Shown here in pieces: positions 2,824 through 63,638 of a stretch of 64,000 nucleotides of DNA. The position numbers and the translations under genes are program-made. Source of the DNA: Neoechinorhynchus agilis (taxonomy: Eukaryota; Animalia; Acanthocephala); contig CM121342.1 of NCBI GenBank assembly GCA_051530055.1, positions 7,634,691 to 7,698,690 on the forward strand, written 5' to 3'. Within the stretch, counting starts at the first letter, position 1, and every line of letters begins with the position of its first letter. The notes under the pieces were generated by a model that was given only the letters and a program-made list of their open reading frames with translations, ran no database searches and was not told the DNA's origin.

Positions 2824-3630
2824 TTTGAAGATTGAATTATTCATGTTTTTATATGACCGAAAATTGCGAGTAGTAATTTACTAGATCTAATATTTTGGAG
2901 GCATAATCTTGTACGCATTTATCAAGGATGCTTGTAAATTTACTATTTTTTCCATCATATAAAAATTATAGAAAAATTAGAATTTTTTTATGGGTGGCTC
3001 AGCCGGTAGTTTTTTTGATATATATTTTATTGTTCCATACACGGCCGAATGGACTCACAGTCCACCGGCCTCTTGGAGATATCTGAGAATCCGGAAGGAT
3101 TCTTACAAACTGACTGCGGGTGTCCATTCAGCCGTGTATGGAAAGGATGCTTGTAAGTTTACTATTTTTTCCATCATATAAAAATTATAGAAAAATTAGA
3201 ATTTTTTTATGGGTGGCTCAGCCGGTAGTTTTTTTGATATATATTTTATTGTTCCATACACGGCCGAATGGACTCACAGTCCACCGGCCTCTTGGAGATA
3301 TCTGAGAATCCAGAGGGATTCTTACAAACTCATTTACCGTACAGTCTTGGAGCATTGAGCGCAGACCAGCGCTTCCCAGGCCGAAATCGGTGGACTGCGG
3401 GTGTCCATTCAGCCGTGTATGGAATAATAAAATATCTATCAAAAAAGAAAAATTAGAATTTGAAGATTGAATTATTCATGTTTTTATGTGACCGAAAATT
3501 GCGAGTAGTAATTTACTAGATCCAATATTTTGGAGGCATAATCTTGTACGCATTTATCAAGGATGCTTGTAAGTTAACTTTACGATGTAAGCTTACTTCA
3601 ATTTTTCCACCATATAAAAATATAGAAAAA
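2824..3630. repeat. Composite dispersed repeat with local duplications
   Basis: Block TTTGAAGATTGAATTATTCATG...ATCAAGGATGCTTGTAA occurs at about 2824-2938 and 3460-3572. A block of about 165 bp occurs at about 2924-3090 and 3143-3310. Part of the first block recurs at 63737-63825. Confidence 0.85.
3230..3446. mobile_element. MITE-like foldback element with ~55-bp imperfect terminal inverted repeats
   Basis: Left arm ...ATATTTTATTGTTCCATACACGGCCGAATGGACTCACAGTCCACC; right arm GGTGGACTGCGGGTGTCCATTCAGCCGTGTATGGAATAATAAAATAT... An internally deleted copy lies at about 3010-3143. No clear TSD. Confidence 0.6.
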
Positions 3631-3814: not shown

Positions 3815-5975
3815 GGATGCAGCGTTCTCGCCCGTTGCAGAGTTAGACTAATGTTTTGTAGGAGGAATGCTCCTGCCCTCGGATAATGATTTCGACTCAG
3901 GTCCCTGTATTTAATGTTTTTTGCATTCCTCAGCGACGATTGCTGCAAACCTGGTTCAATAATGGCGAATTTTATGGCGTTGGCTGCGAATGGCGTCCCA
4001 GAGAAGACATTTTCCTTCTCGCCAAAGGAATGCTGTGACACCGTCAGGTCTATGGCGGCCATCGAGTCGGCAAAGATTGCTCGGCTCTAGGATGTTGGGT
4101 GCATTCACATTGTTCATGGCACTACTAAGAATTACGTTCACTTCGACGTGTCGTGAGTACCTTCCGCCTGATTGCCGACAGACGAGATCATGGCGTCCCG
4201 ATGGTTCCACGGTCGCTCCGCAGCGGCAGCGATGGGATGCGCACATCGGTAACCCAAGTCTCAGGGGCACTGCTATCCTTACTGTCTCGTCGGAGTGTAC
4301 CCACAGAAGCCATTGGGATAGCGTTGAGCCAAGCACCCGATTGTCTTGTAGAGACTGCCGCCAATCGAATTCAGTTCGCAAGGTAACGAGAGTTTGAAAT
4401 TAAAGAGTAATGAATTTGTTTGCAACCATTGACGGGTACATGCTCGCTACCGGAATCTCCATACCAGACTAAGAACCTCCACGAAATCTTCATCCAAAGT
4501 GTAATTCTCGCTATAAACGGATTTAACTGTTTTGCGGCTTGCTTCATAGGATCCCAAATAAGAGGCTGACAGAGAAATATCGGTTACTTTCCGGATACCC
4601 AAACCGCCGGACGACACAGTCAAGGACGCTTGACGCTAAAATTTTCTCGAGAAAGGCTTTCACCGTCTCGTCTAATTTTGCCAGCTTATCCTTATGTCTA
4701 AAAAAGGTGCTGTGCGTAGCTTATAGAGCAATTTTGGAATGAAGAGGGTGTTTTTGATAAGGAACAGAGCCTCGTATGAAGATAATTCATCAACTCGTTC
4801 GCACAGCACCGAAAGTTTCGGTTGAAGATTGACAATTTTTGCTTCAACATTAGAACCAAAAATGCTACTTCCTAGAAGATTCAATCGGTCTAGAGTGATC
4901 ATTTCTATCTCGTGGGCGTCGCCCCACGTTCATCACTAAAATCTCGCATTTCGCAGCATTCAATTCAATGCACATTTTCGCCGTCTCCTTCACGAGTGTC
5001 TCGAAATCGCGCAGTATAACAAAGGGGTTACCTCCGAGCGTGGCATCTTCCAGGTACCAGCCGTTAAAACTGGACTGGAGAGTGTGCGACGGGATTGACT
5101 GCGAGTGAGAAAACCAATGGGCCCAAAGGATCCCCTTGTTGAACTCCTCTTTCTGACCACAAAACGTGGCTATTGAACAACAAGGGAGTTAGAGTCCCAT
5201 AAGCATTAACGAAATAGCGAAATGCTTCTGGTGCGTGATCTCTAACTACTTCGGGCAAATCTGCTCATTGAACTGTGTTGAATGCATTTTTGAAATAAAA
5301 TTTCAAGATCACGCACGGCTTTGAGTTTTCGGTGATGATCGTGCAGAATGAATGAACAATCGCCTCTGCGCCACAAGGTGTACAGCAGCCCAACTGAGTA
5401 TTATCTATTTTTTTATTTTACAAGCAGATTTCGAGTGTTGAGACCGGAGCCCGTCAAGCTCGTGAGCTGATCCATTAGCAAAAGAGGAGATTGCCATCTT
5501 CAATTCTGATTTCGATGATAAAACATAAGGGATTGTATCGAAGGATTTCACGAAATACTGCTCACCGCCGTCACTGGGATGTTTGGAACGAAGACTTCGT
5601 AAAGTTTCTTCGTAATCTTTGGCTAGACTGTCCATTGATGATAAAAGACGAACTGCTCCTCGGACATCTTCGTCTGTGAGCTTCGAAGAAACGCGTCCAG
5701 CAAGCGACCGATGTGAGTTTCGACGGTGGTCAGGCTCCTGGATATACTCCTTACGTAGCTCGCATGCTGTCCAAAGACATTGAGTAAAATTTTCGCTCTT
5801 TTATTTTTGTTGTTAGAGATCCTTCAGAAACATCACCAGCGGAAAACACTAGTCTAGAAAACGCAAAGATACGCATCCACGACAACTCTGACTTAGTCTC
5901 GATGCAGTCTATCAATAGAGAGGTGAATCTCTTTGCGGTCTGATATCGCGTGCCCTTTGGGGAGGCTTAAAAGGT
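3815..5975 (-). mobile_element. Decayed RLE-type (CRE-clade-like) non-LTR retrotransposon, copy 1
   Basis: Frameshifted fragments in the expected order: PKGTRYQTAKR; DVRGAVRLLSS...LRSKHP; RT motifs QQGDPLGPLVF and WYLED; CRCG...RHDLVC zinc knuckle; RPDG...GKCLLWDA restriction-like endonuclease; KY..L and ISLTLQR tail motifs. Confidence 0.88.
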
Positions 5976-11389: not shown

Positions 11390-13955
11390 TTATGCAGACC
11401 CGCGAAATAATTATTGCAAACAATTAACTTACAAGCAATCGGCATGTTAACGATTCCACTGCCGTCCCCTCGCTCCACTCGGGACTTAGCCATCCCAGCA
11501 AACCACGATTCGCCGCATGTCGCACCGTCCACGCTCGACGCTGCGGACACAGGCGCCCTCAACGCACCACTTGTTAATCACGCGGATCACGAGAGGACCG
11601 ACGCTGCAAATTCACAAAATCAACTTTGATCCGAAGAACCCGTAGATAAGAAGCAACAAACAGAAATTCCAGGTACTCTGGGAGGTGAGGCCAATGCTGC
11701 CCGATATCCGAATGTCTCGACACTTACGAAAGAGGGAGAATTTTGGACTCACGGCCCAAGGGATTCCCGATATGTTGGTTCCGGCCTTTTGCTAGCAAAC
11801 TCTGCTCCTCAGCTCAATGAACCTCTTCAGAGCATCCAAAACATCGTCCATTGCACCCCTTCGTTGCTGCAGATCGTGCGCTGCCCAGAAACATCCTGAA
11901 GCCGATCTCGAAGGGCGCTCGATTTCAGGTAGCGAAGAGGTATTCAGCTGAGCGACTGTCTCGAAACAAATACCGAAATATCTTGGACACGTCTTTTCGC
12001 ATTCCCATCTGACGAGTCCCTTGTTACCCACATCAAAAACCGGGTGTCCTCCTTCGACAATTCGTTTGGAGAGGTTCTACGCAAAGCTCGCGTTTTTAGG
12101 GGAGATTTCTCAAAGCCACCGAATCCGAGCCGAGTTTCAACCCGTTCAATGATCCAGAGAGTGCCTTCTAAATTCGCCGATGGTGAGGCGCAGTTCGCAT
12201 TCTATCATCCACCAACGAATTCGCAAGAGATGATACGAAAACTCACGAACTTCTCAGATTCGGAGATGATCCCTCGTGCACCCCGTTGAAGTTTTCGGTT
12301 GATGTTGCTAAAAAAGCCGTTTCTTCGTTCGCAAATGGGTCAGCCAATGGGCTAGGCGGGCTTCGGACTCAGCACCTAAAGGACATGATGTCCTTCTCCG
12401 TAGGTGATCCATCCCATGTTCTCCTGAAAGCCTTGACTCGGTTAGTCGGCGTTTTCTCTCGAGACAACCTGTTCTCTAAAGCGATCGAATTCTTTTTTGG
12501 CGCTTCCCTCTGCGCTTTAGAAAAGAAGGACGGTGGAATTCGTCCCATCGGGATTGGTTCTACATTGAGACGACCAGCAGGGAAAGTGATTTCTAGGCGA
12601 GTCTCAGAAGGTGTCGCCTAAATTCTTCGTCCAGTTCAACTAGGTTGCTGCATAAATCGCGACTTTGAAAATGTTCCCCCCCAGGATAGAAATGATCGAC
12701 TTTGACCGGCTTAAGCTTTTCGGCAGTTGGGTCTTTGATGGGAATGTAGAAAACGAAATTAACAGCCTTCTAGCGAAATTATCGATGCTTTGCGATAGGG
12801 TCTGTGAGCTTGGATCACACGAGGTTCTGTTCTTGATAAAGAATACCCTCTTTATCCCCAAGTTCCTTTACGCTCTACGCACTGCGCCGTTTTTCAATCA
12901 CAAGGTTCAGCATGGCAAGCGAGATGACGGATTGAAGGACTATCTCGAGCAAGTTTTAAATGTCCAGCTGCCAGAAGAGGCATGGCGACGAGCATCCTTG
13001 CCTGTATCTTCTGGAGGGTTGGGCATCCGGAAAACAGCAGACATATCCCTGCCCGCATTTCTAGGCTCCTGTGAGGGAAGCGCAGTTCAGCGCATTTTGA
13101 AATCTACTTATCGTCTTGATAGGCATTTTGAAGAGGGAATCAGTGAGTGGTGTACACTGACCAATTCCGATCAAATACAGCGACGACGTTGTCCGTGCCA
13201 GGTTGTTGGCAGTCTCCACTAGAGAATCAGGTGCTTGGTTGAACGCAGTCCCGTTTGCATCTGTTGGTATTTTCCCCTTCGACGAGGCAGTACTGCTCGG
13301 AGTTTCAATGAGATTAGGACTACCGATGTGTCGACCCCACCGTTGCCGCTGCGGTGCAAATGTGGATTCGTCGGGACGTCACGGTCTCATCTGTTGAAAA
13401 TCAGCCGGCAGATTAGCAAGACATTCCGAAATTAACATTGTGCTGAGCCGGGCACTTGTTATGCGGTAAATACCCCCAATATTTTGGAACCTGTTAACCT
13501 CTGTAGGGACGAAAGGCGTAGACCTGACGGGGTGACCGCATTTCCGTGGCGGGAGGGTAACTGCCTCCTCTAGGACGCCACTGTGTCGATACACTCGCGG
13601 CCAGCAATCTCAAGTTCTCGGTGGTTCAAGCTGGAGATGTAGCGAGCGCTGCCGAAAGCGGAAAACGACGAAATACCTCGATTTAACCTGGGCCCACTTG
13701 TTTGTGCCTTTTGGGGTTGAGACCTACGGATCTCTTGGTAGCGAGGCTCTTCAACTCCTGAAGGATCTGAAGCGACACCTTCAGGTTGCAACCGGTGATG
13801 TAAGGTCAATACCTGCTTCAAAATATCAGCATCGCCGTGTTGAGAGGCAACACTGCAAGCATTCGGGCGACAATTGAGGACGAGGACGGCTAGGCTTTTT
13901 TGCCGGATAAAGTTTTCCTCCAAGATTTTGATAAATAATGTCGGAGTAAAAAAAA
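11390..13955 (+). mobile_element. Decayed RLE-type (CRE-clade-like) non-LTR retrotransposon, copy 2
   Basis: ISKGARFQVAKR; GLGGLRTQHLKDM; ALEKKDGGIRPIGIGSTLRR; LPVSSGGLGIR; CRCG...RHGLIC; RPDG..FPWREGNCLL.DATCVD; end motif AVLRGNTASI; short A-run at about 13948. The RT core (QQGDPLG to YLDD) is deleted near 12655. Confidence 0.88.
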
Positions 13956-16174: not shown

Positions 16175-16920
16175 CAACTTCAACGATAAAATATATTTTA
16201 TCCGGTGGATTATAATCTTCAAACTTCAACGACAAAGTATGCTTTATCCGGTGGATTATAATCTTAAAACTCCAACGATAAAATATATTTTTATCCGGTG
16301 GATTATAATCTTCAAACTCCAATGATAAAATATTTTTTTATCCGGTGGATTATAATCTTAAAACTCCAATGATAAAATATGTTTTATCCGGTGGATTATA
16401 ATCTTCAAACTCCAATGATAAAATAAGTTTTATCCGGTGGATTGTAATCTTAAAACTCCAACGATAAAATAAGTTTTATCCGGTGGATTATAATCTTAAA
16501 ACTCCAACGATAAAATATGTTTTATCCGGTGGATTATAATCTTGAAACTCCAATGATAAAATAAGTTTTATCCGGTGGATTATAATCTTAAAACTCCAAC
16601 GATAAAATATATTTTATCCGGTGGATTATAATCTTAAAATTCCAACGATAAAATAAGTTTTATCCGGTGGATTATGATCAACAAAACTCCAATGATAAAA
16701 TATGTTTTATCCGGTGGATTATAATCTTCAAACTCCAACGATAAAATAAGTTTTATCCGGTGGATTATAATCTTCAAACTCCAACGATAAAATAAGTTTT
16801 ATCCGGTGGATTATAATCTTAAAATTCCAACGATAAAATAAGTTTTATCCGGTGGATTATAATCTTAAAACTCCAACGATAAAATAAGTTTTATCCGGTG
16901 GATTATGATCACCGCAACTC
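16175..16920. repeat. Tandem array, 46-bp unit, ~16 copies
   Basis: Unit ACTCCAACGATAAAATAAGTTTTATCCGGTGGATTATAATCTTAAA; ATCCGGTGGATT recurs about every 46 nt from about 16200 to 16895. Confidence 0.95.
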
Positions 16921-22109: not shown

Positions 22110-22850
22110 TGCCATCACTAGGATTGGTAATCGCATTAATCTACCCATGATTTCGTAATTTTATAGCACCAATTAACTCGTTTTTTTGGCTTAAAACTTG
22201 ATTAATCTCTTATAGTCGCTAGGCCACGATTAGACATTATACTATTTAATATTGTTTTATGGAATCGCATTAATCGGATCGTGAAAAACCCGAATTTTAC
22301 GGCACTAATTAACGGGTTTTTTGCTTAAAACTTGATTAATTTCTTATAGTCGCTAGGCCATGATTAGACATTATACTATTTAATATTGTTTTATGGAATC
22401 ACGTTAATCGGATCGTGAAAAACCCGAATTTTATAGCACTAATTAACGGGTTTTTTGCTTAAAACTTGATTAATTTCTTATAGTCGCTAGACCATGATAA
22501 GACATTTGTTTTATGGAATCGCATCAATCGGATCGTGAAATTTTACGGCACCAATTAACGGGTTTTTTTGCTTAAAACTTGATTAATATCTTATAGTCGC
22601 TAGGCCACGATTAGGCATTATACTATTTAAAATTGTTTTATGGAATCGCATTAATCGGATCGTGAAAAACCCGAATTTTACGGCACCAATTAACGGGTTT
22701 TTTTGCTTAAAACTTGATTAATTTCTTATAGTCGCTAGGCCATGATTAGACATTTGTTTTATGGAATCGTATCAATCGGATCGTGAAATTTTACGGCACT
22801 AATTGACGGTTTTTGTTTAATACTTGATTAATTTCTTATAGCTTCTAGAC
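22110..22850. repeat. Tandem array with ~134- and ~113-bp unit variants, ~5.5 copies
   Basis: Anchor CTTAAAACTTGATTAAT at 22190, 22324, 22458, 22571, 22706 and a degenerate copy at about 22816. Confidence 0.92.
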
Positions 22851-26151: not shown

Positions 26152-27626
26152 ATGGATACTGGTAGGAAACGTACAAATCGCCGTCCCAAGTCTCGAGACA
26201 ATGATCAGCGCAATGTAAAACAACCGAGAACCGAAGTTTACCCTTGGATGATGGAGTGCCGAGCAAAGGGTAAATCTAGTGGCATTAAGGCTAAGGACGA
26301 CACAACAATTAATAATGCTGGTGAGTTCACTTGTAAAAATAGTATGGGACGGGATCGTTAATCGAAAATTAAAGTAAGAACTTTTACACTTGATTTTTTT
26401 TCAGACTTTCGCGTTTGTGTAATCCGCATAAAATTTAAAAAGTATTTTGATAAAAAGATTGAAACCCTTCACAATCATTTTATATGGATGTTAATTTGTG
26501 GGTTTCGATATGGGTCAAAATATTATCGTCGTTTAAAGTATATTTTCTCCACTAGAATTTTTTAATCCAAAGTATGCACGATCGATATCAGTTGAATCTC
26601 ATTTATTTTTTAGGTATTTATGCATTTCTTGAATACATTGAGCAACTAATTAACTATTTTTCGATGTGCAAATCACATTCCCTCCATTTTAACATCAGCG
26701 AATGCAACTATTTAAATTAGTCAGTTTCAATGTTTTCATTTATCGGTTATCGTAATATTTTTTATCTTGTTGTAAATTTTTTGATTTAAAAATATCACAT
26801 TTTTGATCGAAAAAAATCTATATTATTCTCAGTAAAATGTTATTTTGTTAAATGCTGAGTAAATTCGCTTTCCAGCTTGCTTTTAGCTTACTTTAAATTT
26901 TTTTTAGACAAACCATTTATTGACGAGGGACATTCTGACTCTCAAAAAAGAACTCGGACTGCATACACAACCACACAGCTCCTGGAATTGGAGAAGGAAT
27001 TTCATTACAGTCGATATTTGATAAGATCCCGTCGTGTTGCAATGGCGGAATCTTTGGGACTCACCGAGCGTCAGATTAAGATTTGGTTCCAGAATCGTCG
27101 AATGAAACACAAGCGCGAGCAAAAACTTCGATCAAAAAATCAACAGAGCGCATGCACGTTCAACGAATTGGAGCCTTGTATGATTGATGCAAATAACAAC
27201 GTAGGAGACAGTTCTCAATACCCAACGGACTCTAATCAATACAATCGACAACATGATGAATTGTTCAGATCGTCCCAAGTCGCCAACGCTAATCAATCAT
27301 ATTTGGCTCCTTATATGTGGCCAAGGAACTACTCAAGTCTACCCTGCACACTTGGTTTCATGCCGCCAGCCAATCCTCATACATCTGCAAATACCATAAA
27401 TCACAATCAATGGGCCGTACCAGTAGCAAACACACAACAAGTCAGTGATGCTGGAGGCCACGTGTACCAAGGACCGTCTTCGATATTCGCCATTAACTCC
27501 CCTATTTCAACAATGAATCAACTTTCCGAGAACAGAAACAATAATTTGTTCACTTATCCCATATTCCACGGTGTACAAATGGCACCTCACAACGATAAAT
27601 GTGAAAATGATTTTGTTTATCAATAA
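26152..27626 (+). CDS. Hox gene, most similar to paralogy group 3
   Basis: Exon 1 contains hexapeptide VYPWM; phase-1 intron 26321-26907; homeodomain [60 protein letters not shown]. The long linker and long C-terminal tail are Hox3-like. Confidence 0.85.
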
Positions 27627-28627: not shown

Positions 28628-29733
28628 ATGCGAAATGAACGAGTCCGGAGAATGGTGAGTTTTTTTGCAATTTGATTGGATGATTAATATATTCCAAAAA
28701 ATTATAGTCTAAATGTCATAACAGTGAAAATGAGATTGGGAAAATCAATCGTATGTTTTCAACACGATCGAGAAGTTTTCCCAGATCACAGAAAGAGATA
28801 CGATGCATGAATCCATCTCATAATTATCAGACCAAAATTCAAAAAGATCTCTGTAAGGATTTGGGGATCGATAAACCCGGGCAATCATTAAAGAATCCAT
28901 GGGGAAATATATCTTATGCGCAAATGATATGCTATGCGATTAACACAAGCGTTTGGCGAAGACTCACACTAAGTCAAATTTGTCAATGGATTTCTACCAA
29001 TATTCCTTACTTCAGCACTCGGACCGATCCAAAGAGTAGTTGGGGATGGAAAAACTCCATTCGGCACAATTTATCATTGCATAAGAAGTTCGTTCGAGTT
29101 CCTCTTATAAGTAAGAATTTTTTGAATGGAAAAGGTAATGTTCTTAAAGCAAGTGGTATCAAATATGTTTGGACTGTTCAAGCATGCGAGGAGAAGTCAG
29201 GATCTCCTTATAAGAAATACGCTTCAGCGAGGAAACAAAAACGGAAAAAGTTGGAAACTTCTTATCCATCAAATAACAATATATCACCGACATATCCGTA
29301 CGCGCAAAATGCATCAATGTGTTCAAGAAGTCGTAATGATGATCGCCGCCGAATCGCCGAATCAAGCACAAGTGAAAAACCAAAAGTAGTCCTCAGCAGA
29401 AGTGATATTCGAATTATCTCATTTGTTTGCACTCCACTAAAACCTCCAGTGGAAATCAATCACGAAGTGAGTCAAATTGAAACAAATGTTCACATTCAGA
29501 ATGTAAACTTTAATTCAAACCAAATCAAGGTGGAGCCCTCAGATCATTCAACAATGTCAGATCAATTTATGCTTGTGAATAAGAGGAAGTCTTCAAGCGA
29601 TCTGGTATACACACAGAAAAAAACGAAAGCTTCATCAGGTGCAGTTTCCAACGGTTCGTTGTTGCACTCGTCCATTGAAAATGCTGAGTATCAGTTTGAT
29701 GCAATGATAAGATCGTTTCTCGGTCGTAATTAA
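28628..29733 (+). CDS. FOXO: FoxO-subfamily forkhead transcription factor (divergent)
   Basis: NPWGNISY, LTLSQI, PYF..RTDPKSSWGWKNSIRHNLSLH with the FoxO-specific helix 2-3 insert; C-terminal FDAMIRSFL resembles the FoxO transactivation motif. Probable short first exon 28628-28654 with a phase-0 intron 28655-28707 (53 nt). Confidence 0.82.
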
Positions 29734-30644: not shown

Positions 30645-32651
30645 ACCAACACGTTTATTGTTTAACAAATACAAAGAATAGGACCAAGCTGTGAAAACAT
30701 TCGGATCGGTTCGTGTGGGAATATCTGGTAGTTGGAAATCCCTTCGGAACGGTCTATCCAGTAGGGGATGTCCGTTCGTTTGAGAATATCCGGTTGGAAG
30801 GTCTCCATTTTGGTGGCAATTGGTGTTTATTGTTTGCAGGAGCGCTTGTAAGGTAAGTCTTTCCTCAGGTTCATTTCAAGTTCTGATATTCGAGAAGATT
30901 GGGCAGTATGGAAAAAGGAGCGTAGGTATAGGGAGGTGCGAGGTTGAGGGAGGGTGAAACGAATTAGGATTACAAGTGTTGTGCTCATGTGAAAAGGGGA
31001 AGATGTGTTGTAGAAATTGTGATGGTAGGATTGAGAGGCGTTTTGATTGTTTTATGAAAATAGCATCAAGGCATTCGGTGAGAGGGGGAAAAATTGTACA
31101 AATTTTAGATGCTATTTTATGAAACATTTCAAGACGACGGACTTGAGATTTGGAATGGTTGCAAAATACGAGAAAACCGTAGGTGAGGGATGGTAAGATA
31201 AAGCAGAAGTAAAATTTGTAGAGATCGGGTGAAGGGATTCCTAAATGTTGGAGGCGTTTGAGGAGATCAATTTTAAAGGCGTTGTGCTTTAGGGAGAGAG
31301 TGATTCGCGAGTCCCATTTCTAATTTGATTGAAATCGGAGACCCACAATTCTTAGGGAGGTGACGCGTAGGATGTCATTTAGAAGCTCATGAGATGATGT
31401 GAAGATGCGCAAGAGAGATGATCATTTTGAAGCATTTGGAGAAATTCAGGTAGAGTTTGTGATTGGTGCAGAAATCTTTTATGCGTTTGATTTCGTTAGA
31501 AGTTAAAGAAAGAGAGAGGTGGGTGGTGATTGAGTGATGAGGGTGCCATCGTCGCCGTATAAGAAGAGTTCAAAGTGAGAGGAGAGATGTCTGAGGTTGT
31601 TTAGGAAAATATTAAAACGAAGTGGTGACAGCAGAGCACCTTGATGGTGGGCTGATCGAGGAGATAGATCGGCCGAAGTGGAAATGTGCGAGTTTTTAAA
31701 CATTTCCGATAATTTTTAAAGAGCAGGTAGAATTGATATTGGACGGAATGATTCGGTGGAAATCGGATGTCCACTTTTGGGCAGAATAATAACTTTAGCA
31801 GTTTCAAGACATGATGGTTTAAATTGAGGTTAAAAAGGTCTATGAGTTCTGGAACAATGCAGCGAAGGGTCCAGTTTGGGATTTCTGAATTCGTGTCAGA
31901 GTTCGCGGGGAGAGGGAGTTTAGAGGCGGATGAGTAGCCGTCGGTACTAGTGAACACTTTGTCGAGGTGAGCGTCAAGACGAGCTGGGAAGTCAATAAGT
32001 TGAAGCAACTCGGAGAAGGGTGGACGAGGAAATAGTTTATTGAAGTCCCCTGCAATTAAGAAATGGTGTGAATTTGTGGAGTTTATGAGCACGAGAGGCC
32101 GGAGGGAGATAGACGTTAGCAATGGTGAATTCTCGAAGACTATTTCTTAGAGGACCTGAGAAATAGAAGCTAGTGTCCGATAAGGTTCGAAACGTCTTTA
32201 ATAAATAATCATTTACCGGATGTAGAGCTAAAAAATAATTCCAAGTTAAAGCCACCTTTGAGTATCATTTTTTAACCTTATTTTGAACTAGCATAATAAT
32301 GCCATCTCAGATTATGTATTTAATTTTAAATCTGGTTCAAAACCTTGATATATGTGCAAATGACTCCTAAATTCCCTTAATTAGGATTTGAACGGCCTTT
32401 GTGCCATCACGCACGGCCTGTGAGAGATAAAGAGTTTAGTCGTGATTTCCATATCCAAATTGAGGCCCCCTCCTGTACGGTCCTCGCGGTATGGAAGTAG
32501 GAGTACCGGGAAGGATTGCTGAATCGCTGATGAATGGGGTTAGCCACGTTTCTGTTAAAATGACTACGTCGGCTTTTGAGGAAGATGAAATGAGTGAAAT
32601 TTCATCTAGTTTAGAAAGGAGGCTACGGGCAAGGAAAATTCGAAGAAACAA
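30645..32651 (-). mobile_element. Decayed APE-type LINE ORF2 (CR1/L2-like)
   Basis: Endonuclease motifs ARSLLSKLDE, DVVILTETWL, VYLPP, IAGDFN, LDKVFT; RT motifs QGALLSPLRFNIFLN and LYGDD; large internal deletion, stops and an AT-rich interruption at about 32165-32430. Confidence 0.85.
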
Positions 32652-33213
32652 TTAACTTTATTTGCTACAAAACCGAAGTCAAAAATTACGAAATGGAATC
32701 AAAGATTTTTGCATTATGATGAAATAACAAATATAAAGCAATGGGTTATAACTACGTTTCGAAAACAGAAATGTTAGATTTGCAAAGCGCATCAGATAGA
32801 TAGTTTGGACAAATTCTTTGTCCATTTTACTTATGCTGTATAGTTTTGCCAATGGCATCTAATTGCAAAAAACGAAAGCGGTAATGGCTTCTAAAAAAGC
32901 AAAGATTTTCTAGCATAAATGCTAAGAAAAATTCGTATTTAAAGCACATCTCGATTAAACGGAATGAAGTTTGTTAATTGATTGGTGTTCGTGTAAACCG
33001 ACCAACTCTCGGATGCCCTGGAAAGCACTTTATATAAGCTGAAGGCATATAACCGTCTTTATCATAATCAAAGACGATTGAACGAGCTCAAACAAGTCCT
33101 TCTGTCATCCTTGCAAGACCGCGTCATATCTCTCTCTCCTTTTTTGAAAGAACTGTAAGCCTAATTACTATGGACTATTGAATATTGTGACGAGTTTGAG
33201 ATGTTAAAATCAT

Positions 33214-33387
33214 TTAACAGCAGCAACACGGACAGCAACAGCAGCAGCAAGGTTTGCAGCAGCAACAGCAGCAGCAAGGCTTGCAACAACAGCAAGTTGT
33301 GTGGCATGTAGTGCAACACTTTTTGCAGCAGCATCCACAGCATGGCTGGCAGCAACAGCAGCAAGGAGAACAACAACAACAAGACAT
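33214..33387 (-). CDS. Ultra-cysteine-rich microprotein 1 (57 aa, 38 Cys)
   Basis: Translated by hand: MSCCCCSPCCCCCQPCCGCCCKKCCTTCHTTCCCCKPCCCCCCCKPCCCCCCPCCCC-stop. Below the ORF-track cutoff. Mixed TGC/TGT codons; paralogue at 52800-52988. Confidence 0.8.
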   Translation of the reverse strand: MSCCCCSPCCCCCQPCCGCCCKKCCTTCHTTCCCCKPCCCCCCCKPCCCCCCPCCCC

Positions 33388-33466
33388 CTTGGATATTATT
33401 GAAAGTTGATTAAAGAGAGAAGGTAACTAGCTGAAGTGTACAAGTTTTCAAGGGCCGTTCATGGAA

Positions 33467-33474
33467 TATTTATG
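33467..33474 (-). promoter_or_regulatory. TATA-like box of Cys-rich gene 1
   Basis: CATAAATA on the minus strand, 80-87 nt upstream of the ATG, nearly the same offset as in the paralogue. Confidence 0.4.
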
Positions 33475-33689
33475 CAAAAATGTGGCATTCATCGAGACAT
33501 GACTAAGGTCAGGATGAGTCTCACTCTCCATTCACTTTGGACTGCACCAGAATGCATTGAAGTTGCAAAGTGAAACAATACTATGGCACAATACGGAAAC
33601 AAACTCATTACGATGACCGGACCAATGACAAAATATTATTGAGTCACCTCACTCATTCTAAAATGGAAAATAAACCAGTCAAATGTAGT

Positions 33690-36298
33690 TAGACGCTTGC
33701 GTTCGGTTTAGTGCTAACTTCATTGAGGCTTTTTAATTTTATAAAGAAGAAGATCAGTTCAGTGCTCCTTTAAATAAATATCGAGTACCTAAAAGTTTAA
33801 TTTGTTCTTAAGTTCAAAATGAAAAATAAATTAGTCGAATTTAATAAGACGCTTACGTTCGGTTTGGTGCTACATTCATTAAGGCTTTTAAACTTTATAA
33901 AGAAAAGATTAGTTCAGTGCTCCTTTAAATAAATATCGAGTATCCAAGAGTTTAATTTGTTCTTAAGTTCAAAATGAAAAATAAATTAGTCGAATTTAAT
34001 AAGATGCTTACGTTCGGTTTGGTGCTACATTCATTGATGCTTTTAAACTTTATAAAGAAAAAGATTAGTTCAGTGCTCCTTTAAATAAATATCGAGTATC
34101 CAAAAGTTTAATTTGTTCTTAAGTTTAAAATGAAAAATAAATTAGTCGAATTTAATAAGACGCTTACGTTCGATTTAGTGCTACATTCATTGATGCTTTT
34201 AAACTTTATAAAGAAAAAGATTAGTTCAGTGCTCCTTTAAATAAATATCGAGTATCCAAAAGTTTAATTTGTTCTTAAGTTTAAAATGAAAAATAAATTA
34301 GTTGAATTTAATAAGACGCATACGTTCGATTTAGTGCTACATTCATTAAGGCTTTTAAACTTTATAAAGAAAAAGATTAGTTCAGTGCTCCTTTAAATAA
34401 ATATCGAGCATCTAAGAGTTTAATTTGTCCTTAAGTTTAAAATGAAAAATAAATTAGTCGAATTTAATAAGACGCTTACGTTCGATTTAGTGCTACATTC
34501 ATTAAGGCTTTTAAACTTTATAAAGAAAAAGATTAGTTCAGTGCTCCTTTAAATAAATATCGAGTACCTAAAAGTTTAATTTGTTCTTAAGTTCAAAATG
34601 AAAAATAAATTAGTCGAATTTAATAAGACGCTTACGTTCGGTTTGATGCTACATTCATTGATGCTTTTAAACTTTATAAAGAAAAAGATTAGTTCAGTGC
34701 TCCTTTAAATAAATATCGAGCATCTAAAAGTTTAAGAAGACGATTAGTTCAGTGCTCCTTTAAATAAATATCGAGCATCTAAGAGTTTAATTTGTCCTTA
34801 AGTTTACCAAGAGTTTAATTTGTTCTTAAGTTCAAAATGAAAAATAAATTAGTTGAATTTAATAAGACGCTTACGTTCGATTTGGTGCTACATTCATTAA
34901 GGCTTTTAAACTTTATAAAGAAAAGATTAGTTCAGTGCTCCTTTAAATAAATATCGAGTATCTAAGAGTTTAATTTGTTCTTAAGTTCAAAATGAAAAAT
35001 AAATTAGTCGAATTTAATAAGACGCTTACGTTCGATTTGGTGCTACTTCATTGATGCTTTTAAACTTTATAAAGAAAAAGATCAGTTCAGTGCTCCTTTA
35101 AATAAATATCGAGTATCCAAAAGTTTAATTTGTTCTTAAGTTTAAAATGAAAAATAAATTAGTCGAATTTAATAAGACGCTTACGTTCGATTTAGTGCTA
35201 CATTCATTGATGCTTTTAAACTTTATAAAGAAAAAGATTAGTTCAGTGCTCCTTTAAATAAATATCGAGTATCCAAGAGTTTAATTTGTTCTTAAGTTTA
35301 AAATGAAAAATAAATTAGTTGAATTTAGTTAGACGCATGCGTTCGATTTAGTGCTACATTCATTAAGGCTTTTAAACTTTATAAAGAAAAAGATTAGTTC
35401 AGTGCTCCTTTAAATAAATATCGAGCATCTAAGAGTTTAATTTGTTCTTAAGTTCAAAATGAAAAATAAATTAGTCGAATTTAATAAGACGCTTACGTTC
35501 GGTTTGGTGCTACATTCATTGACGCTTTTAAACTTTATAAAGAAAAAGATTAGTTCAGTGCTCCTTTAAATAAATATCGAGCATCTAAAAGTTTAATTTG
35601 TTCTTAAGTTCAAAATGAAAAATAAATTAGTCGAATTTAATAAGACGCTTACGTTCGGTTTGGTGCTACATTCATTAAGGCTTTTAAACTTTATAAAGAA
35701 AAGATTAGTTCAGTGCTCCTTTAAATAAATATCGAGCATCCAAGAGTTTAATTTGTCCTTAAGTTTAAAATGAAAAATAAATTAGTCGAATTTAATAAGA
35801 CGCTTACGTTCGGTTTGGTGCTGACTTCATTGACGCTTTTAAACTTTATAAAGAAAAAGATCAGTTCAGTGCTCCTTTAAATAAATATCGAGTACCTAAA
35901 AGTTTAATTTGTTCTTAAGTTCAAAATGAAAAATAAATTAGTTGAATTTAATAAGACGCTTACGTTCGATTTAGTGCTACATTCATTAAGGCTTTTAAAC
36001 TTTATAAAGAAAAAGATTAGTTCAGTGCTCCTTTAAATAAATATCGAGCATCTAAGAGTTTAATTTGTTCTTAAGCTCAAAATGAAAAATAAATTAGTCG
36101 AATTTAATAAGACGCTTACGTTCGGTTTGGTGCTACATTCATTAAGGCTATTAAACTTTATAAAGAAAAAGATTAGTTGGGTGCTCCTTTAAATAAATAT
36201 CGAGTATCCAAGAGTTTAATTTGTTCTTAAGTTTAAAATGAAAAATAAATTAGTTGAATTTAGTTAGACGCATGCGTTCGGTTTGGTGCTACATTCGT
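33690..36298. repeat. Satellite-like tandem array, 155-156-bp unit, ~16-17 copies
   Basis: Anchor CTTAAGTT at 33807, 33962, 34118, 34274 and onward; one irregular junction with partial duplications at about 34735-34815. Confidence 0.97.
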
Positions 36299-42955: not shown

Positions 42956-45719
42956 GAACGGCGTGGGTTGTGCGCACTATGTGGAATTTCGGGAGCTATT
43001 TTTTGTGGATTAGAATAATCTCTAGTTGTCCTTCTGACTGACACTTTGGTAAAGAACGACAAGACAGCATGTCTATTTGTCATGCTCTTACTTTTTGAGG
43101 CCAAATAAATCCCAAACAGAATCTAAAACAGCTTTTGTCTTCTAAAGACAACGCCAGACTTACAGGAATTGCCATTTTTGAAGAATCTATAATTCGTGTT
43201 ATATCTTAATAAAAAAAGGTTCCATTCCCGTGAGCGTTTAAGTGTGATTTTTAAAACGAGTAAAAATCAATTATAAGTAATTAGGAAATACTTTCATTCA
43301 AGACGATTTGTGAGGACATGAGAACGAAGTAACGAGCGTTATTTAGCTGCCAGGAAGTGGTTAAAACGCGAGAAGTGATTAAACGCTTCAAAGAATACAT
43401 GGAATTTCCTGAGTTCTAGGAGTTATGAGAATTGTGTGCCTTCTAACAGGCGTAAAGCATCACGTCTTGTTAGAACGCAAATTTAAGAAACGGACAAATT
43501 TCGATCACGTTTATCGGTTGTTTGTAAGAAGAAAAAAACAATAAATTAACTGTCGATTCAATTTAAGAGCAAATTATTTTTTGAATGGCAACAAAAACAT
43601 TCTAGTTGTTCTATAATAAGTCGGGACGAAAACTGGTGACTTGTTCGCACTAGAAATCTAAATAAGATAAACCTGTAGGAGCCGTACGTTAAGTGCAGAA
43701 TCGGAGATAAAGATCATCTGTCTGTAAAGGAGTACTCACACAATGTCGCACAGCAGACAATTGGAAACCAAAAGGAAACGGAGGTGACAATTGACAAACA
43801 ATTGAGGCAGCCGTGGTGCAAGGCATCCGATTCGAGAAGCAATGTTGATGCTTGGAATTGGACAATTAACGACCTCTAGTCTCCAATAGACGGTCGCTAG
43901 ACTGTTTATTTTTAAACCAGAACAAAATCCCTACATTAAAAAGTCTATCTATTCAATTTTAAGACTTTAAACCCACTTTGAAAGCACTATCATAACGAAT
44001 AAATATTCCTGCAAGTTTAAAATATAATGCGAAATAAATTTAGACTCACCAAATCCTCGTGATAAAAGACAAGTCTATTCCATAAGTGTAATTTTTCCTG
44101 CACAGAATATTCTTCAAAACTCACATCGAGAGTTTGACCCCTCCTATGTTTAATAGAAAAATGTTAAGTCAAATAGAAATCTTAAGAAACTTCATTTCTA
44201 TACTAAAAGACTAAAAATAATCACGCGTACGTTTTGATCCAAATCAGAATCGTTAAAAGATTGAACCGCTTTCAAAATGGCGGAACCCGTTAAGAATTCT
44301 GCTAATTTTTAAAAACAAATACCAAAAAAATGTTATCGATTTCCTAAATTTTCGCAACAAATCTCACTTTCTTTTCCCGGCTCGATCAGGTTTTTCTGCG
44401 TGCTCTCAAAGAACAACTGACGCTAAGCGTTCTGCTGCTGCCTTCATTCTCAAAACGAGCAGTGTTCTCCCAACAAAAGACTGTTATTCGTTACAAAAGA
44501 CAGAAAATGAATGCTATGCATTTTTTTACTGATTTTAATAAGAATTAGTCGAACTTTCTGATGTTTGACGCGCACGAAAAATCGTAAAAAAATTAGTTAT
44601 CGACGTTTTTGATTGACGCTCACGGATTTGAAAGCGAAAACATTAAATTTGGAATGTAGATCTTCTCTCAAAAGAGTGATGTCTAAGAGAAACAATATAA
44701 AGATTGTGTATCAAATTGACTCTTTAAAAAGTACATAAGTGCTTGTAGAAAAAAATTACAGGTTAGCCCGGCGGATGGATTTTTTTTATTAAATCGGCGT
44801 TTTATAGACTCGTGCTAACTATAAATTAAAAAATGATGTAATTGGATGATGTAAACTAAAAATCAAGTCGCTGATGGCAGCCGACAGAGGTTGCATGAAT
44901 CTTTAAAAGCCATTGGTTGCATTTAATGTAAACAAAATACGGTTGTGATTTCCGAGAAAAAAACAAATTCTGATTTGTACAATAAATTTGATCTCAATTG
45001 ACTTTTGTTAAGTGCAATCACACAACTTAATAATTATTCTAAAGACGATTTTCCAATGTCCTCCAATTTGGCTTATTATTTGATCACGACAACAAAGCGC
45101 AGATTCGGTTCGTTAAGAAAGGTACCCAACCAAAATGGACTGAATTACAAATTATGAACAGGCGAAACGCTGAAAATTCATCGATAAAGTCGTTTCTAAA
45201 CAGTATTTCTATCCAATATTTCTTTATACACTGAAAATCCATACATGAGCAGATTTACGATAACTCTGATTTATTTAATCCATATTTATAAATTTCTTTG
45301 GAGTAGAAAATAAGAAACGGATGCACTTGGATGTGACTTGACCGTCTCTGCAAATTCGAGTCTCCTGTAGATTGGAGTATTCATGAGGACACCTCCAGCG
45401 AATTCGAGTGTCCATGAGGACCTAAAGATACATGGGTTTTTCTTTGTTAATTAATAAATAAACGTGTTATTATTATACTCTCGTCAAAGAATCTTAAAAC
45501 AATCCAATTGACAGCGATGTTACAAATAACAATAAACTTTAAAATACGATCATGGGTTTTTTTATGCAGCATTTAATAAAACCCACGGAAAATTCTTTAA
45601 AAATAGCTCACCATCGCAGTACAAGAAAGTAATTATCGAACAAAGGAATGTATTCATGAATGACTTGTATCGATTTTAAAAACTGCGTTTTTTCATACCA
45701 TTGAATTATATTTTAGCAA

Positions 45720-46165
45720 TTGAGGATTGGCAAATTAAATACGAAATCCACAAATATGGACATTTCTTGAATGGACGGTTAAACTGCTTTTCTTTTCAAG
45801 TCTTAATAATATTCAAGGAATTCACGATTGGCAAATTCAATACGAAATCAACAAATATGGACATTTCTTGAATGGACGGTTAAACTGCTTTTCTTTGCAA
45901 GCCTTAATAATATTGAAGGAATTCAGGATTGGCAAGTTCAATACGAAATACACAAATATGGACATTTCTTGAATGGACGGTTAAACTGCTTTTCTTTACA
46001 AGCCTTAATAATATTCAAGGAATTCACGATTGGCAAATTCAATACCAATTCCTCAAATATGGGCATTTCATTAAGGGATGTTTAGACTGCGTTTCTTCGT
46101 ACGCTTTAATAATATTTAAGGACTTCAGGATTGGCAAATTCAATACCAAATCCACAAATATGGAG
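45720..46165. repeat. Tandem array, 101-bp unit, ~4.4 copies
   Basis: Anchor GATTGGCAA at 45725, 45826, 45927, 46028 and 46129. Confidence 0.93.
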
Positions 46166-50331: not shown

Positions 50332-52483
<2,152 letters not shown>

Positions 52484-52799
52484 TTTCAAAAAAAGCACAA
52501 GACAAGCCTTACTTTTGAAGGAATATATTCGATTAGTCACCGCTTGTCAGCAAGTTTTCTGACTAAGTTTCCAGTTATGCCTCAACCGCTAAAAGCACAC
52601 GGCAAAATTCCCTTTACCCGTTATTTTCCCCATATTCCACACCCACTCAGCAAAAAAGGCGTGATGGTTGATTTAATGAGGTTCAAGACGATTTCCCGTC
52701 TTCAACAACGATAAACGAAGACGAAGTAAAACCTCACAACCGTTCAACATGACGGGCCCTTAGTGCCATGCAAGTATGCTACCTTCTCTACTTCTACAT

Positions 52800-52988
52800 T
52801 TAACAGCAGCATGATTTGCAGCAAGTGCAGCAACAGCATGGGCAGCAGCAACAACAGCAAGGCTTGCAGCAACAGCAGCATGGGCAGCAGCAACAGCAAG
52901 GCTTACAGCAACAGCAGCATGGGCAACAGCAGTCACATCCGCAACCGCAACCGCAACCGCATCCTCCTCCGCATCCACAACAGGACAT
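52800..52988 (-). CDS. Ultra-cysteine-rich microprotein 2 (62 aa, 41 Cys)
   Basis: MSCCGCGGGCGCGCGCGCDCCCPCCCCCKPCCCCC...KSCCC; ATG start, TAA stop, upstream TATA box. Confidence 0.82.
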   Translation of the reverse strand: MSCCGCGGGCGCGCGCGCDCCCPCCCCCKPCCCCCPCCCCCKPCCCCCCPCCCCTCCKSCCC

Positions 52989-53070
52989 TTTTGTTGACTT
53001 GTTTAAAATAAAAAGATTGGTGAAAAGGGTAAGTTTCTTGAGATAGTTTCCAAGTATCGAATGTTGCTCC

Positions 53071-53079
53071 TTTTATATA
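53071..53079 (-). promoter_or_regulatory. TATA box of Cys-rich gene 2
   Basis: TATATAAAA on the minus strand, 83-91 nt upstream of the ATG. Confidence 0.6.
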
Positions 53080-53197
53080 GGCTATTACTTCTGTGTTCTT
53101 CTTTTCAATGTATTCAATTGTTTTTTTACAAAAACACTAAATGAACACTGAACTAGGAGCAGCACGCTTTTCGATCGGAAAATAAAAGTATTCATGA

Positions 53198-60968: not shown

Positions 60969-63638
60969 TTAGCCAAGAAAAATCGTCTCATCTTTTCTCT
61001 TCTTTGTTACCACAGTACCCGGCTTGTGCTGAGCATCCGGATGATTGGCAAGTTCCTGCGGACACGTACTAACTGGACTTTCATTAATTAGCTCCTTTAA
61101 ATCGAAGAAAACAGCACTATCTTCTTGAGTAACTAAAGAGATGGCGCGTCCACTCTTTCCAGCTCGTCCAGTTCGTCCAATTCGATGTGTATAATCCTCT
61201 ATTGTCTTAGCCATATCGTAGTTTATGACATGTGAGACATCTTTTATATCGATTCCACGCCCGGCCACATCCGTCGCCACTAAAATATCCTTCATCCCAA
61301 GTTTTAGGGACGATAAAGCATAATCTCGTTGTTCTTGCCCTTTGCCTCCATGAAGTGTACATGTACTATATCCCATTTTCTCAAGTGATTTTGCCAATAT
61401 ATCAGCAGCCTTTTTCTGGTTCACAAAGATAATAATGGGCGGTTCAAATCCTCGCTCTAAGATCTGACATAATTTCTTCTTTTTCTCATTTTCAGAGCAC
61501 ATTATAACAATTTGCTCAACTCTTTCCGTTGGCTTTCCAATCGCACCGATATAGACGGCAGCTGGACGTCTTAAATAATTTCTAGCTAATCGTTCTACGG
61601 CCGGAGGCATCGTGGCGGTAAACATAACCGTTTGGCGGTACTTGTTCTTGTTTCCAAGACTGTACATCGCACTAATCACTTCCTCGTCCGGCTCTTCAGG
61701 TTTCATGTTTGTAACTGGAAGGAAATCTAGAATTTTCTGTACGTCTGCCTCGAAACCCATATCGATCATACGATCCGCTTCGTCCATCACAACGTACGTA
61801 CACTGATTCAGAACGAGATACCGATTCTCAAGAACGTCAACTAGACGACCAGGAGTACCTATGACAACTTCACATCCCATTCGTAACCGAAATCCTTGAT
61901 CCTCTCTCGATAAACCTCCAATTAAGGAGACAATCTTAATATTCAAAGGGGTACCGAACAGTAAACATTCCGACTCAATCTGTTGAGCCAGTTCTCGAGT
62001 AGGTGCCAGAATGAGAGCATAAGGTCCTTGATCAGCATCTTCTAGTCTCTCAATCTTTGGTAAAGATTGAATCCAAACGAAAAGAGGAATAAGAAATGCA
62101 GCAGTCTTTCCCGATCCCGTTTCAGCTATTCCAATCACGTCTCTATTCTGTAAACCGATTGGAATAGCCTGTCGCTGAATAGGCGTCGGTTCATCATAAC
62201 CAATACTTTTAATCACTTCCAATATATCTGCAGGAAGACCAGCTTCTGACCATTTTCTTACTGGATTAGGAATATTACCTCCTTTTGTACTTATATTGAA
62301 GTCTTCACGGAATATGCGCCAATCCCGCTCGGTCATCTGAGACAATGATTTGTCTGTCCAATGACGTTCGTCATACTTTATTCTAGCTTCTCTATTTGCT
62401 AATCGCTTAAGTCGAACACCTTCCTGATCTTTCTCTGCCTGAGTTCGTCGCTCTTCAAGCAACGATCCGTAGAATTCCGTCTGTGATTTGCGTTGAAGTT
62501 TTAAATCAATCCCTGCAAAATGGCCACGACCATAGAATTGAATCGTGTGTCGGTCTTTGTAAAGTGGGTTGTAGTCCACGCTTGTATCCTCGTTTGTGTC
62601 CCAGTCAAATACGAACTTACGATCGTTCAATCGGCGGCGTTTTCTCCTCTTTCTAATTGTATCCACACCAGAGTCTTAGAAAAAGCTGTTAATGAAATTT
62701 GTCGCAAAATAGAAAGTATTTCTCGAGTTTGAATACAATTCGAATTAAAAATCCCAAAACTTCAGCTTGGTAAATGTTGACAAAATGGCCGTCCCATTTT
62801 TAAAGTGATGTTCTCAATGGCGAATTGTAACGCACTCCAAGGCCTCAGCCTCCTTCTCAAGCACTGATTGTAAGTTTTTAAATATTGGAGTACTCGAAGG
62901 AACAATTGGATAGGAATAAAGTGATATTGAAAATTAAAACAATTTTAGTTATTTTGTTTGGGATCGTCATTTCAGGAAGGGGGAAAGTATCTCCACCACA
63001 ATTCTAACTCTGTATTTTTGATGATGATGATGATGATCAGAATAGTGATTGATTTATTAATTTCCATTATTTCGTCGGACTTCAGGTTTCTTGCAAGTTT
63101 TCTACTATTCAAGCGCTTAAATGGGAATTAATAAATCAATCTCTATTCTTTTCAGTACCAAATATCGAATGATTTTCCCCGATGATTAAATTGAAAATTG
63201 CCTAGACCGAATAGACTTCAGTGCGTTCGCACCCAAGTAACGTTCTCTAATTGCAGCAGATTCCCTTCCTTTGTCTTCATTTGTTTTTAAATCTTCAAGA
63301 GTCGTTCTTTTTCCATCCCGTTTTCCACGACTAAGATCTCGAGCGTCCCCATCGTGCCTTGCCTCATTTAAATACCTTAGATGGCTAGCTCGTGCTTCTT
63401 CGATTTTTCTCCTTTGTTTATCCGCTTCCTCTTGCCGACGCTTCAAAGCTTCAGCCTCGCGTTCCGCTTTACTTAAAAATTTCGGTTTGGATTCCTCTTC
63501 CTCGAGTCGTTTTCTCCTTTCAACCATTTCATCAAGTGATAGAGGAACGCGTTTCTTCTTAGCGACGGGCTGATCATCCTTTTCCGCCGTTTTCATTTCA
63601 TCATCCGATGAATTTAATCCCTTTTTGCTCCGGTGCAT
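60969..63638 (-). CDS. DDX23: DEAD-box helicase DDX23/Prp28
   Basis: [28 protein letters not shown]-motif, [24 protein letters not shown]. Probable single phase-1 intron 63232-62675. First ATG at 63638. Confidence 0.97.

Follow-up and report, generated by a model that had tools for sequence, protein, structure and literature searches.

Two short open reading frames (ORFs) whose predicted products consist of two-thirds cysteine were identified on the minus strand of a 64,000-nt stretch of the genome of Neoechinorhynchus agilis, an acanthocephalan parasite of the mullet gut (assembly GCA_051530055.1, contig CM121342.1, positions 7,634,691 to 7,698,690; hereinafter, the window). These ORFs, denoted A and B, appear to be diverged copies of one ancestral sequence, and we consider their products strong candidate proteins. 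The probability that the cysteine frame is the coding one is put at ~0.7; more tentatively, with a probability slightly below 0.4, A and B might encode ultra-high-sulfur matrix proteins, a structural role that is slightly favored over a role in metal binding. The two ORFs are as follows:

ORF A: 33387..33214, minus strand; ATG at 33387, stop codon TAA ending at 33214; 57 codons plus TAA; CM121342.1:7667904-7668077
ORF B: 52988..52800, minus strand; 62 codons plus TAA; CM121342.1:7687490-7687678

Both ORFs are uninterrupted. The predicted product of A, MSCCCCSPCCCCCQPCCGCCCKKCCTTCHTTCCCCKPCCCCCCCKPCCCCCCPCCCC, contains 38 cysteines among its 57 residues (66.7%; 6.0 kDa; 21% sulfur by weight) and that of B, MSCCGCGGGCGCGCGCGCDCCCPCCCCCKPCCCCCPCCCCCKPCCCCCCPCCCCTCCKSCCC, contains 41 among 62 (66.1%; 6.1 kDa; 22% sulfur by weight), in agreement with the initial annotation of the window, which reported a 57-aa, 67% Cys ORF at A with a partner at 52800-52988. 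The features described there as common to the two proteins, namely the MSCC start, the KPCCCCC(C) units and the identical TGCTGCTGTTAAATG end, are all found in both. Both proteins contain runs of 4-7 adjacent cysteines, with a maximum of 7, and the CC-x-P motif occurs five times in each protein; A additionally contains a CCTTC/HTTCC stretch and two C-x-C motifs, and B an N-terminal (CG)n run and 10 C-x-C motifs. The 38 non-Cys positions that follow Met1 in the two proteins combined are occupied solely by S, P, Q, G, K, T, H and D, so that neither protein has a single aliphatic or aromatic residue after Met1, and no signal peptide is present in either. Given the absence of both a signal peptide and hydrophobic residues, the earlier proposal of an extracellular product is not supported. 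Loci A and B have the same architecture, with the nucleotide A at position -3 relative to the ATG, and the internal duplications (27 and 39 nt) are in frame.

The window contains 11 (TGY)5 runs, all of them on the minus strand and all at loci A and B (expected number, 0.00), and no other 20-aa stretch with at least 8 Cys is encoded in any frame of the window. No further (TGY)5 copy was detected within the ~72 kb examined, in which A and B are 19.6 kb apart. The description of the pair as a two-gene family is valid on the scale of these ~72 kb.

Divergence of the two copies

The similarity between A and B starts exactly at the ATG and stops at TAAATG, and the flanking sequences cannot be aligned (upstream, the score falls below the mean of the shuffles; downstream, it is in the shuffle range). 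Given that A and B have no exact 18-mer in common, recent gene conversion is unlikely. The wobble base differs in 9 of the 34 aligned Cys-Cys codon pairs (26%, compared to 45% under full randomization); neither TGA nor TGG occurs among the 79 Cys codons; and every length difference between the two ORFs is in frame. The longest perfect trinucleotide run comprises four units in A and three in B, and slippage could not maintain a homogeneous repeat with runs this short. In a simulation of neutral decay that started from B, at 0.25 hits per site, 2% of the copies retained an intact ORF and 0 of 5000 retained an ORF with at least 60% Cys. Neutral decay would have wrecked these ORFs and, therefore, A and B are not a drifting microsatellite. 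Judging from these comparisons, A and B are best described as two old paralogous ORFs whose sequence is apparently preserved, a signature of purifying selection. A neutral CAG/CAA (CTG/TTG) microsatellite is ruled out by the short runs, the in-frame lengths and the retention of the ATG and TAA boundaries against unalignable flanks; the initial annotation, which had preferred paralogous ORFs to such a microsatellite, is in this respect upheld by the unalignable flanks, the synonymous divergence, the short runs and the neutral simulation alike.

A broader version of the repeat explanation posits that neither strand encodes a functional protein, the two loci being an interrupted CAG/CAA-type low-complexity repeat that was copied once and in which the frames are open through composition; such loci would be untranscribed or else transcribed without a translated product. 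The location of A between a satellite array and retroelement debris is compatible with this scenario, and so are the internal 27- and 39-nt duplications, which reflect repeat dynamics, and the absence of both predicted products from all protein collections in which they were looked up. Nevertheless, we consider it quite unlikely, given that the ATG, the stop codon, the KP units and the 66-67% Cys content are kept in both copies while the flanks cannot be aligned, that 26% wobble divergence has accumulated without a single TGA or TGG between perfect runs of at most four units and with all lengths in frame, and that none of the 5000 simulated neutral copies (d=0.25) keeps a Cys content of at least 60%.

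The coding strand

The preference for the minus strand has to be weighed against the public BRAKER2 annotation (PMC12690905), which includes a plus-strand gene at both loci:

BRAKER model opposite A: 32085..33409, plus strand; 72 aa; two exons; first exon 10 aa; intron 32115-33220 (1106 nt)
BRAKER model opposite B: 52768..53140, plus strand; 90 aa; three exons; first exon 2 aa; introns 52774-52821 (48 nt) and 53029-53080 (52 nt)

As reconstructed here, these models correspond to Q-rich peptides (e.g., ...QQQQGLQQQQHG...), although exact look-up did not confirm the reconstructions. A further complication for the minus-strand assignment is that the third positions of the Cys codons coincide with those of the antisense Gln codons (TGC/TGT vs CAG/CAA), so that substitution patterns cannot separate the Cys and Q readings.

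Several other features do separate the two frames and favor the Cys frame. The bracketing of the repeat by an ATG and a stop codon is seen at both loci in the Cys frame only; the Q frame has no ATG and, at both loci, contains an in-frame TAA directly before the Q run. The homology between A and B stops at GACAT, and the Q ORFs continue for 7 and 18 further, unrelated codons. The Cys frame is 68% and 67% homogeneous, the corresponding values of the antisense Q frame being 60% and 57%, and includes no hydrophobic residues among its 38 non-Cys positions, compared to 14 (L, V, W and F) among the 48 non-Q positions of the Q frame, where they form random-looking strings such as VVWHVVQHFL. The GGA/GGT variation in the (CG)n run of B is silent in the Cys frame and amounts to a His/Gln switch in the Q frame. 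Furthermore, the two plus-strand models are mutually inconsistent, with different acceptors, unrelated first exons, and two exons in one versus three in the other; at A, the 10-aa first exon lies 1.1 kb away, within retroelement debris.

The DDX23 gene in the same window bears on the reliability of these models. The ORF at 60969-62666 encodes a protein that is 100% identical to an N. agilis protein and 80% identical to a protein of Pomphorhynchus laevis. The public DDX23 model (505 aa) starts with a 2-codon exon followed by a 47-nt "intron" that is cut from a continuous 565-aa ORF, and the part that is dropped as a result carries a conserved DDX23 domain (PF25430, ORF residues 18-102); judging by the sequence, this model looks mis-built. 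Given that the same pipeline made up a mini-intron in DDX23 and that the two models at A and B disagree with each other, the opposing annotation at these loci appears weak. A gene finder such as AUGUSTUS, trained on ordinary codon usage, would, we infer, penalize a frame with 67% TGY and favor CAA/CAG. In the same DDX23 region (60969-63650, minus strand), a separate 150-aa gene located upstream (ORF 63186-63650) resembles the missing DDX23 N-terminus.

As negative controls, we used the three matches obtained by scanning 241 million metagenome records for sequences that encode the pattern CCCC-KP-CCCCC. None of the three matches contains a bracketed, hydrophobic-free poly-Cys ORF similar to A and B. 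In one of them (L004), the Q frame (2078-2914, plus strand) is a 278-aa ORF that extends far past the repeat, whereas its antisense (2164-2343, minus strand) is an ATG-started 59-aa by-product ORF with ~40% Cys that is rich in V, Y, A, L, I and W; the other two comprise a match that faces a short Q run within a 136-aa ORF (L005) and an apparent CAG-type stretch (L003). Because L004 demonstrates that by-product Cys ORFs with an ATG do arise, and thus counts against the Cys reading, the probability of that reading is held at ~0.7 and not higher.

The alternative in which the plus strand is the coding one, the two loci being short terminal exons of Q-rich peptides and the poly-Cys frames their antisense by-products, accordingly retains some arguments beyond the BRAKER models and the openness of the Q frame at both loci. 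There is a conserved CATTTAACAG that looks like a 3' splice site; at B, the Q run is followed by a perfect donor (AAGG|GTAAGT) and a 52-nt intron of typical size; AATAAA/ATTAAA is found on the plus strand 24-25 nt past the common GACAT; and motifs of the QQQQGLQQQQ type are commonplace among genuine Q-rich proteins. Set against these are the in-frame TAA just before the Q run and the lack of an ATG at both loci, the discrepancies between the two models in first exons, introns, acceptors and exon counts, the 7 and 18 unrelated codons beyond GACAT where homology ends, the random-looking hydrophobic residues at 14 of 48 non-Q positions, and the TGA that precedes the donor-like GGTAAC at A; the mini-intron of DDX23 is an artifact of exactly this kind from the same pipeline. 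On balance, we regard coding by the plus strand as improbable, if anything marginally more so than a silent repeat.

Candidate roles of the cysteine-rich products

Under the preferred interpretation, A and B would be single-exon minus-strand genes for ~6 kDa cytosolic proteins in which Cys is punctuated by K, P, G, T and S. Given the lack of a signal peptide and of a hydrophobic core, and the two-thirds Cys content, such a protein would act purely through thiol density. After its deposition in a hardening structure, intramolecular and intermolecular disulfides would lock it in place, in the manner of the mammalian ultra-high-sulfur keratin-associated proteins (KAPs); the first candidate site would be the sulfur-rich cortex of the proboscis hooks, with egg envelopes and sperm as further possibilities. 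We prefer a structural role because the N. agilis complex has hooks rich in sulfur and because runs of 5-7 adjacent cysteines, together with the periodic Pro, are more compatible with cross-linking than with discrete metal clusters. Punctuation of the CC-x-P, CCTTC and (CG)n types is a mark of the mammalian ultra-high-sulfur KAPs. In the hooks of the N. agilis complex, sulfur reaches 12.8 wt% in intact hooks and 36 wt% at spots, with the highest values at the outer edge (PMC7377084), and has been ascribed to cysteine/cystine disulfides of proteins as yet unidentified (PMC12651140); the sulfur content predicted for A and B is 21-22 wt%.

Two observations on other acanthocephalans are relevant in this context. 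An unrelated, longer KAP-like Cys-rich protein with CCxSPxCC-type repeats is represented by GJ496_008100 in P. laevis and by a cluster in D. truttae, where it is transcribed (PMC12274423, supplement); it is evidence that repeat proteins of high sulfur content are indeed produced in acanthocephalans. Among the tRNA genes of P. laevis, the tRNA-Cys class is the largest, with 57 copies on one contig and ~71 rows with the GCA anticodon in S6 Table (PMC7310846), an abundance that, albeit as circumstantial evidence, would be in line with a large requirement for the decoding of Cys codons.

Several considerations weigh against the matrix-protein interpretation. No precedent was found for a Cys content of 66-67%, the top KRTAP subfamily having 50.1% (PMC2528016); nothing ties A and B to the hooks specifically; and a 6-kDa, aromatic-free, Cys-rich protein suits a metallothionein-like role about as well.

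Comparison with known Cys-rich systems places A and B closest to an extreme of a general type. Like the KRTAP4/5/9/17/28/30 genes, A and B are small putative genes, each apparently with a single coding exon, seen in two copies within ~72 kb, and their predicted products lack a signal peptide, are dominated by Cys with CC-x-P and CC-T-T-C punctuation and N-terminal Gly/Cys runs, and might be involved in dense disulfide cross-linking of a hardened structure. Both A (66.7%) and B (66.1%) exceed the >30 mol% Cys that defines the KRTAP class, in which the richest subfamily has 50.1% (PMC2528016). Given that KRTAPs are unique to mammals (PMC2528016), the host here is an acanthocephalan and no homology is detectable, the likeness is one of analogy only. 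Moreover, A and B are much shorter than KRTAPs, almost lack Ser/Gln spacers, and are 19.6 kb apart with unrelated genes in between, in contrast to the dense tandem clusters of KRTAP genes. Drosophila Mst84D/Mst87F and the avian EDCRP/EDDM proteins similarly are lineage-specific, repetitive, Cys-rich structural proteins cross-linked by disulfides; their repeat units are different, however (C-G-P in Mst, DPCC in EDDM), their Cys fraction is far lower than that of A and B, and there is no homology. With 36% Cys, EDCRP is the richest protein of the chicken epidermal differentiation complex (PMC6713690). A and B exceed the richest benchmark that we found by ~16 percentage points and, if translated, would be the most cysteine-dense natural proteins for which a benchmark was found (50% in the richest KRTAP subfamily). 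As far as their sequences indicate, they have no homology to any named family, and we claim no membership for them; they appear to be an extreme variant of ultra-Cys-rich small proteins.

The strongest competing proposal retains the same genes on the same strand and interprets their product as a soluble, cytosolic, metallothionein-like thiolate sponge that would trap Cd, Pb, Cu, Zn and Ag in metal-thiolate clusters or networks and so aid the extreme build-up of metals in acanthocephalans. The size of 57-62 aa, below 10 kDa, is that of a metallothionein; aromatic and hydrophobic residues and a signal peptide are all lacking; the residues that separate the cysteines are K, S, T, G, P, D and Q; and B contains 10 C-x-C motifs. 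Metallothioneins typically contain ~30% Cys. The 67% Cys of the predicted proteins, about double the metallothionein fraction (66-67% vs roughly 15-35%), and the runs of 5-7 adjacent Cys in place of C-x-C/C-x-x-C spacing are far outside the range of known metallothioneins; adjacent thiols cannot all contact one ion; and the periodic CC-x-P is closer to KAPs than to metallothioneins. No core of the metal-response element (MRE; TGCRCNC) is found within 800 nt upstream of A or B, although this core may not apply in this phylum. There is no Pfam match to metallothionein either, but the tool is blind here, and domain-based screens would miss proteins of this kind. In support of the metal-binding proposal, acanthocephalans accumulate Cd and Pb to levels up to 2,700 times those in host muscle (PMC5294906); the mechanisms of this accumulation are unclear, and P. 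laevis lacks a Pfam metallothionein (PMC12274423), such that the host of A and B is a metal hyper-accumulator without a clear canonical metallothionein. Overall, a metal sponge seems possible but doubtful.

The structural and metal-binding roles are not mutually exclusive. A bolder and rather improbable conjecture is that A and B are the founders of a class of near-poly-cysteine "thiol sponges", hidden from domain-based and HMM-based annotation, which would be the sink behind the thousand-fold accumulation of Cd and Pb and possibly also a source of hook-cortex sulfur; the large tRNA-Cys set of another acanthocephalan would support translation of such proteins. An acanthocephalan host provides both proposed roles with a concrete home, namely hooks rich in sulfur (PMC7377084) and an accumulation of Cd and Pb by 2,700-fold (PMC5294906). 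Two open questions are involved, neither of which has a molecular candidate: what binds the metals that are concentrated up to 2,700-fold, by mechanisms described as unclear (PMC12274423), and which proteins are behind the hook sulfur, which is used as a taxonomic character (PMC7377084, PMC12651140). A 6-kDa, two-thirds-Cys protein is a directly testable candidate for either, and the published mRNA-seq of 74 N. agilis worms (PMC12690905) could show its expression and sex bias.

Finally, the Cys ORFs might be translated in some other capacity, either as heavily S-acylated "cysteine-string" membrane anchors or, in the case of B, as a Cys-sensing poly-Cys upstream ORF (uORF) of the adjacent kinase gene; we consider this very unlikely. 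Cysteine strings are substrates of palmitoylation. Runs of adjacent cysteines are shared with DNAJC5 (cysteine-string protein) and CYSTM, but there the strings are short and lie beside a J domain or in a hydrophobic transmembrane context, whereas A and B are a string throughout, lacking a J domain, any other module and the hydrophobic residues that could provide a first membrane contact; membership in these families was rejected, there being no Pfam domain (with a tool that is blind here) and no hydrophobic residue. Polycysteine leader ORFs serve as Cys-responsive attenuators in mycobacteria (bioRxiv 10.1101/834739), and B lies on the same strand as, and between, the D123 and kinase genes with short spacers; the uORF idea was nevertheless rejected because A has retroelement debris and no gene downstream and, accordingly, the idea fails for one of the two conserved copies.

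Flanking elements, database searches and genomic context

Putative regulatory elements were found on both sides of the two ORFs:

Putative core promoter and 5' untranslated region of A: 33420..33473, minus strand; ATAAATA at -86 (33473..33467); CTTGAAAACT at -65 (33452..33443); TTACCTT at -39 (33426..33420)
Putative core promoter and 5' untranslated region of B: 53026..53079, minus strand; TATATAAAAGG at -91 (53079..53069); CTTGGAAACT at -66 (53054..53045); TTACCCT at -44 (53032..53026)
3' element of A: 33029..33076, minus strand; palindrome CGTCTTT-N9-AAAGACG (33076..33054), 19-nt gap, poly(A)-signal-like TATAAA (33034..33029, +180 after the stop)
3' element of B: 52672..52723, minus strand; palindrome CGTCTTC-N13-GAAGACG (52723..52697), 19-nt gap, ATTAAA (52677..52672, +123 after the stop)

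The upstream elements form a collinear trio at both loci, namely a TATA-like box, CTTGRAAACT ~25-30 nt further on, at a putative start-site position, and TTACCYT; the initial annotation had noted the first and the third, which are indeed present at -86/-91 and -39/-44, respectively. The two strands of the window together contain only 29 TATAWAAR sites, among them the perfect TATATAAAAGG of B. The upstream regions have five 5-mers in common at similar offsets, compared to 3.2 expected (P=0.26), and no common 6-mers, so that, given the AT-rich DNA, the trio is not statistically separable from chance. Also unfavorable to the gene reading is that the TATA element of B, located 119 nt past the D123 stop, could belong to D123 as its poly(A) signal. 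TTACCYT is, in addition, the reverse complement of the donor-like ARGGTAA. Given that the sharing of promoter motifs is within chance and that there are no MRE cores near either gene, the notion that A and B are co-regulated is not sustained.

A better common feature is found downstream: the window has exactly two copies of CGTCTT-N(5-25)-AAGACG, compared to 0.07 expected, 138 and 77 nt after the stops of A and B, respectively. Under a broader and fairer definition, in which any 6+6 hairpin arm common to two segments of 250 nt is counted, ~2% of random real pairs qualify, and the folding z-scores are weak. The common palindrome followed by a poly(A)-like hexamer is suggestive, both observations being post hoc; being palindromic, the element could equally be a transcription-factor site.

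Exact look-up showed that the products of A and B are absent from a collection of 15 billion proteins, whereas the same look-up retrieved the product of a 182-aa control gene of the window; this fits the earlier remark that A had been missed by the ORF track. All other-frame ORFs at both loci and the reconstructed BRAKER products are likewise absent from the protein collection. A phmmer search with B against 5.8 billion proteins yielded 92 word-sharing candidates, none of them at E<=10, the composition-corrected search being blind in this case; there was no Pfam match at E<=0.1, Keratin_B2 included, and none in the PDB, with tools that are equally blind to the composition of A and B. In a local control, phmmer of B against A gave E=1.1e6 with default settings and 3e-42 with --nonull2, and blastp pairs A with B only when composition statistics are turned off. 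Because the HMMER composition correction hides even the paralog within the same window, the lack of a detected homolog is uninformative. TransDecoder has a default minimum of 100 aa, which would drop ORFs of the length of A and B. This program was used to annotate the transcriptome of N. agilis, in a paper that makes no mention of cysteine or metallothionein (PMC12690905), and no A/B-like sequences are found in the text supplements of the N. agilis and D. truttae papers. There is a methodological warning in this case: the gene predictor took what looks like the wrong strand, the TransDecoder length cut-off would exclude such ORFs, and the HMMER correction makes the A/B family unsearchable.

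Locus A has a 2.6-kb array of 156-bp satellites on its upstream side and decayed retroelement ORFs on its downstream side. Locus B occupies a gap of 714 bp that is flanked by the D123 gene (stop at 53198) and by a protein-kinase gene (ATG near 52483), which, like B itself, are on the minus strand; the kinase start is 316 nt downstream of B. In the 38 kb around DDX23 of P. laevis, no Cys-rich stretch was detected; the neighboring genes there are different, with little synteny. The satellites at 33659-36296 comprise two adjoining 156-bp arrays of 6.9 and 9.6 copies, with an identity of 94% and a higher-order period of 467, that begin ~270 bp upstream of ORF A. Other tandem arrays are located at 16176-16910 (46 bp x 15.9 copies), 22157-22841 (~134 bp x 4.6), 45704-46164 (101 bp x 4.6) and 2924-3330 (219 bp x 1.9). 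The decayed ORFs at 31503-32651 (minus strand), 12286-13222 (plus strand) and 3956-4397 contain endonuclease/reverse-transcriptase-like motifs recognizable by eye (...ILTETWL..., ...IAGDFN...) and are probably relics of non-LTR (long terminal repeat) retroelements; the stretch at 30-32 kb has a strong GC skew (+0.34).

The window contains no tRNA genes and no Rfam match at the gathering score, the E-value mode producing sub-threshold, low-complexity noise alone. A complete 301-aa tropomyosin with a Ser/Gly-rich N-terminal extension is encoded in a single ORF at 747-1652 on the minus strand (Pfam E=5e-50), and its exact product is not in the protein collection. On the plus strand, a Hox-type homeodomain exon (26877-27626) and a forkhead-domain gene (28753-29733) are located ~1.1 kb apart.

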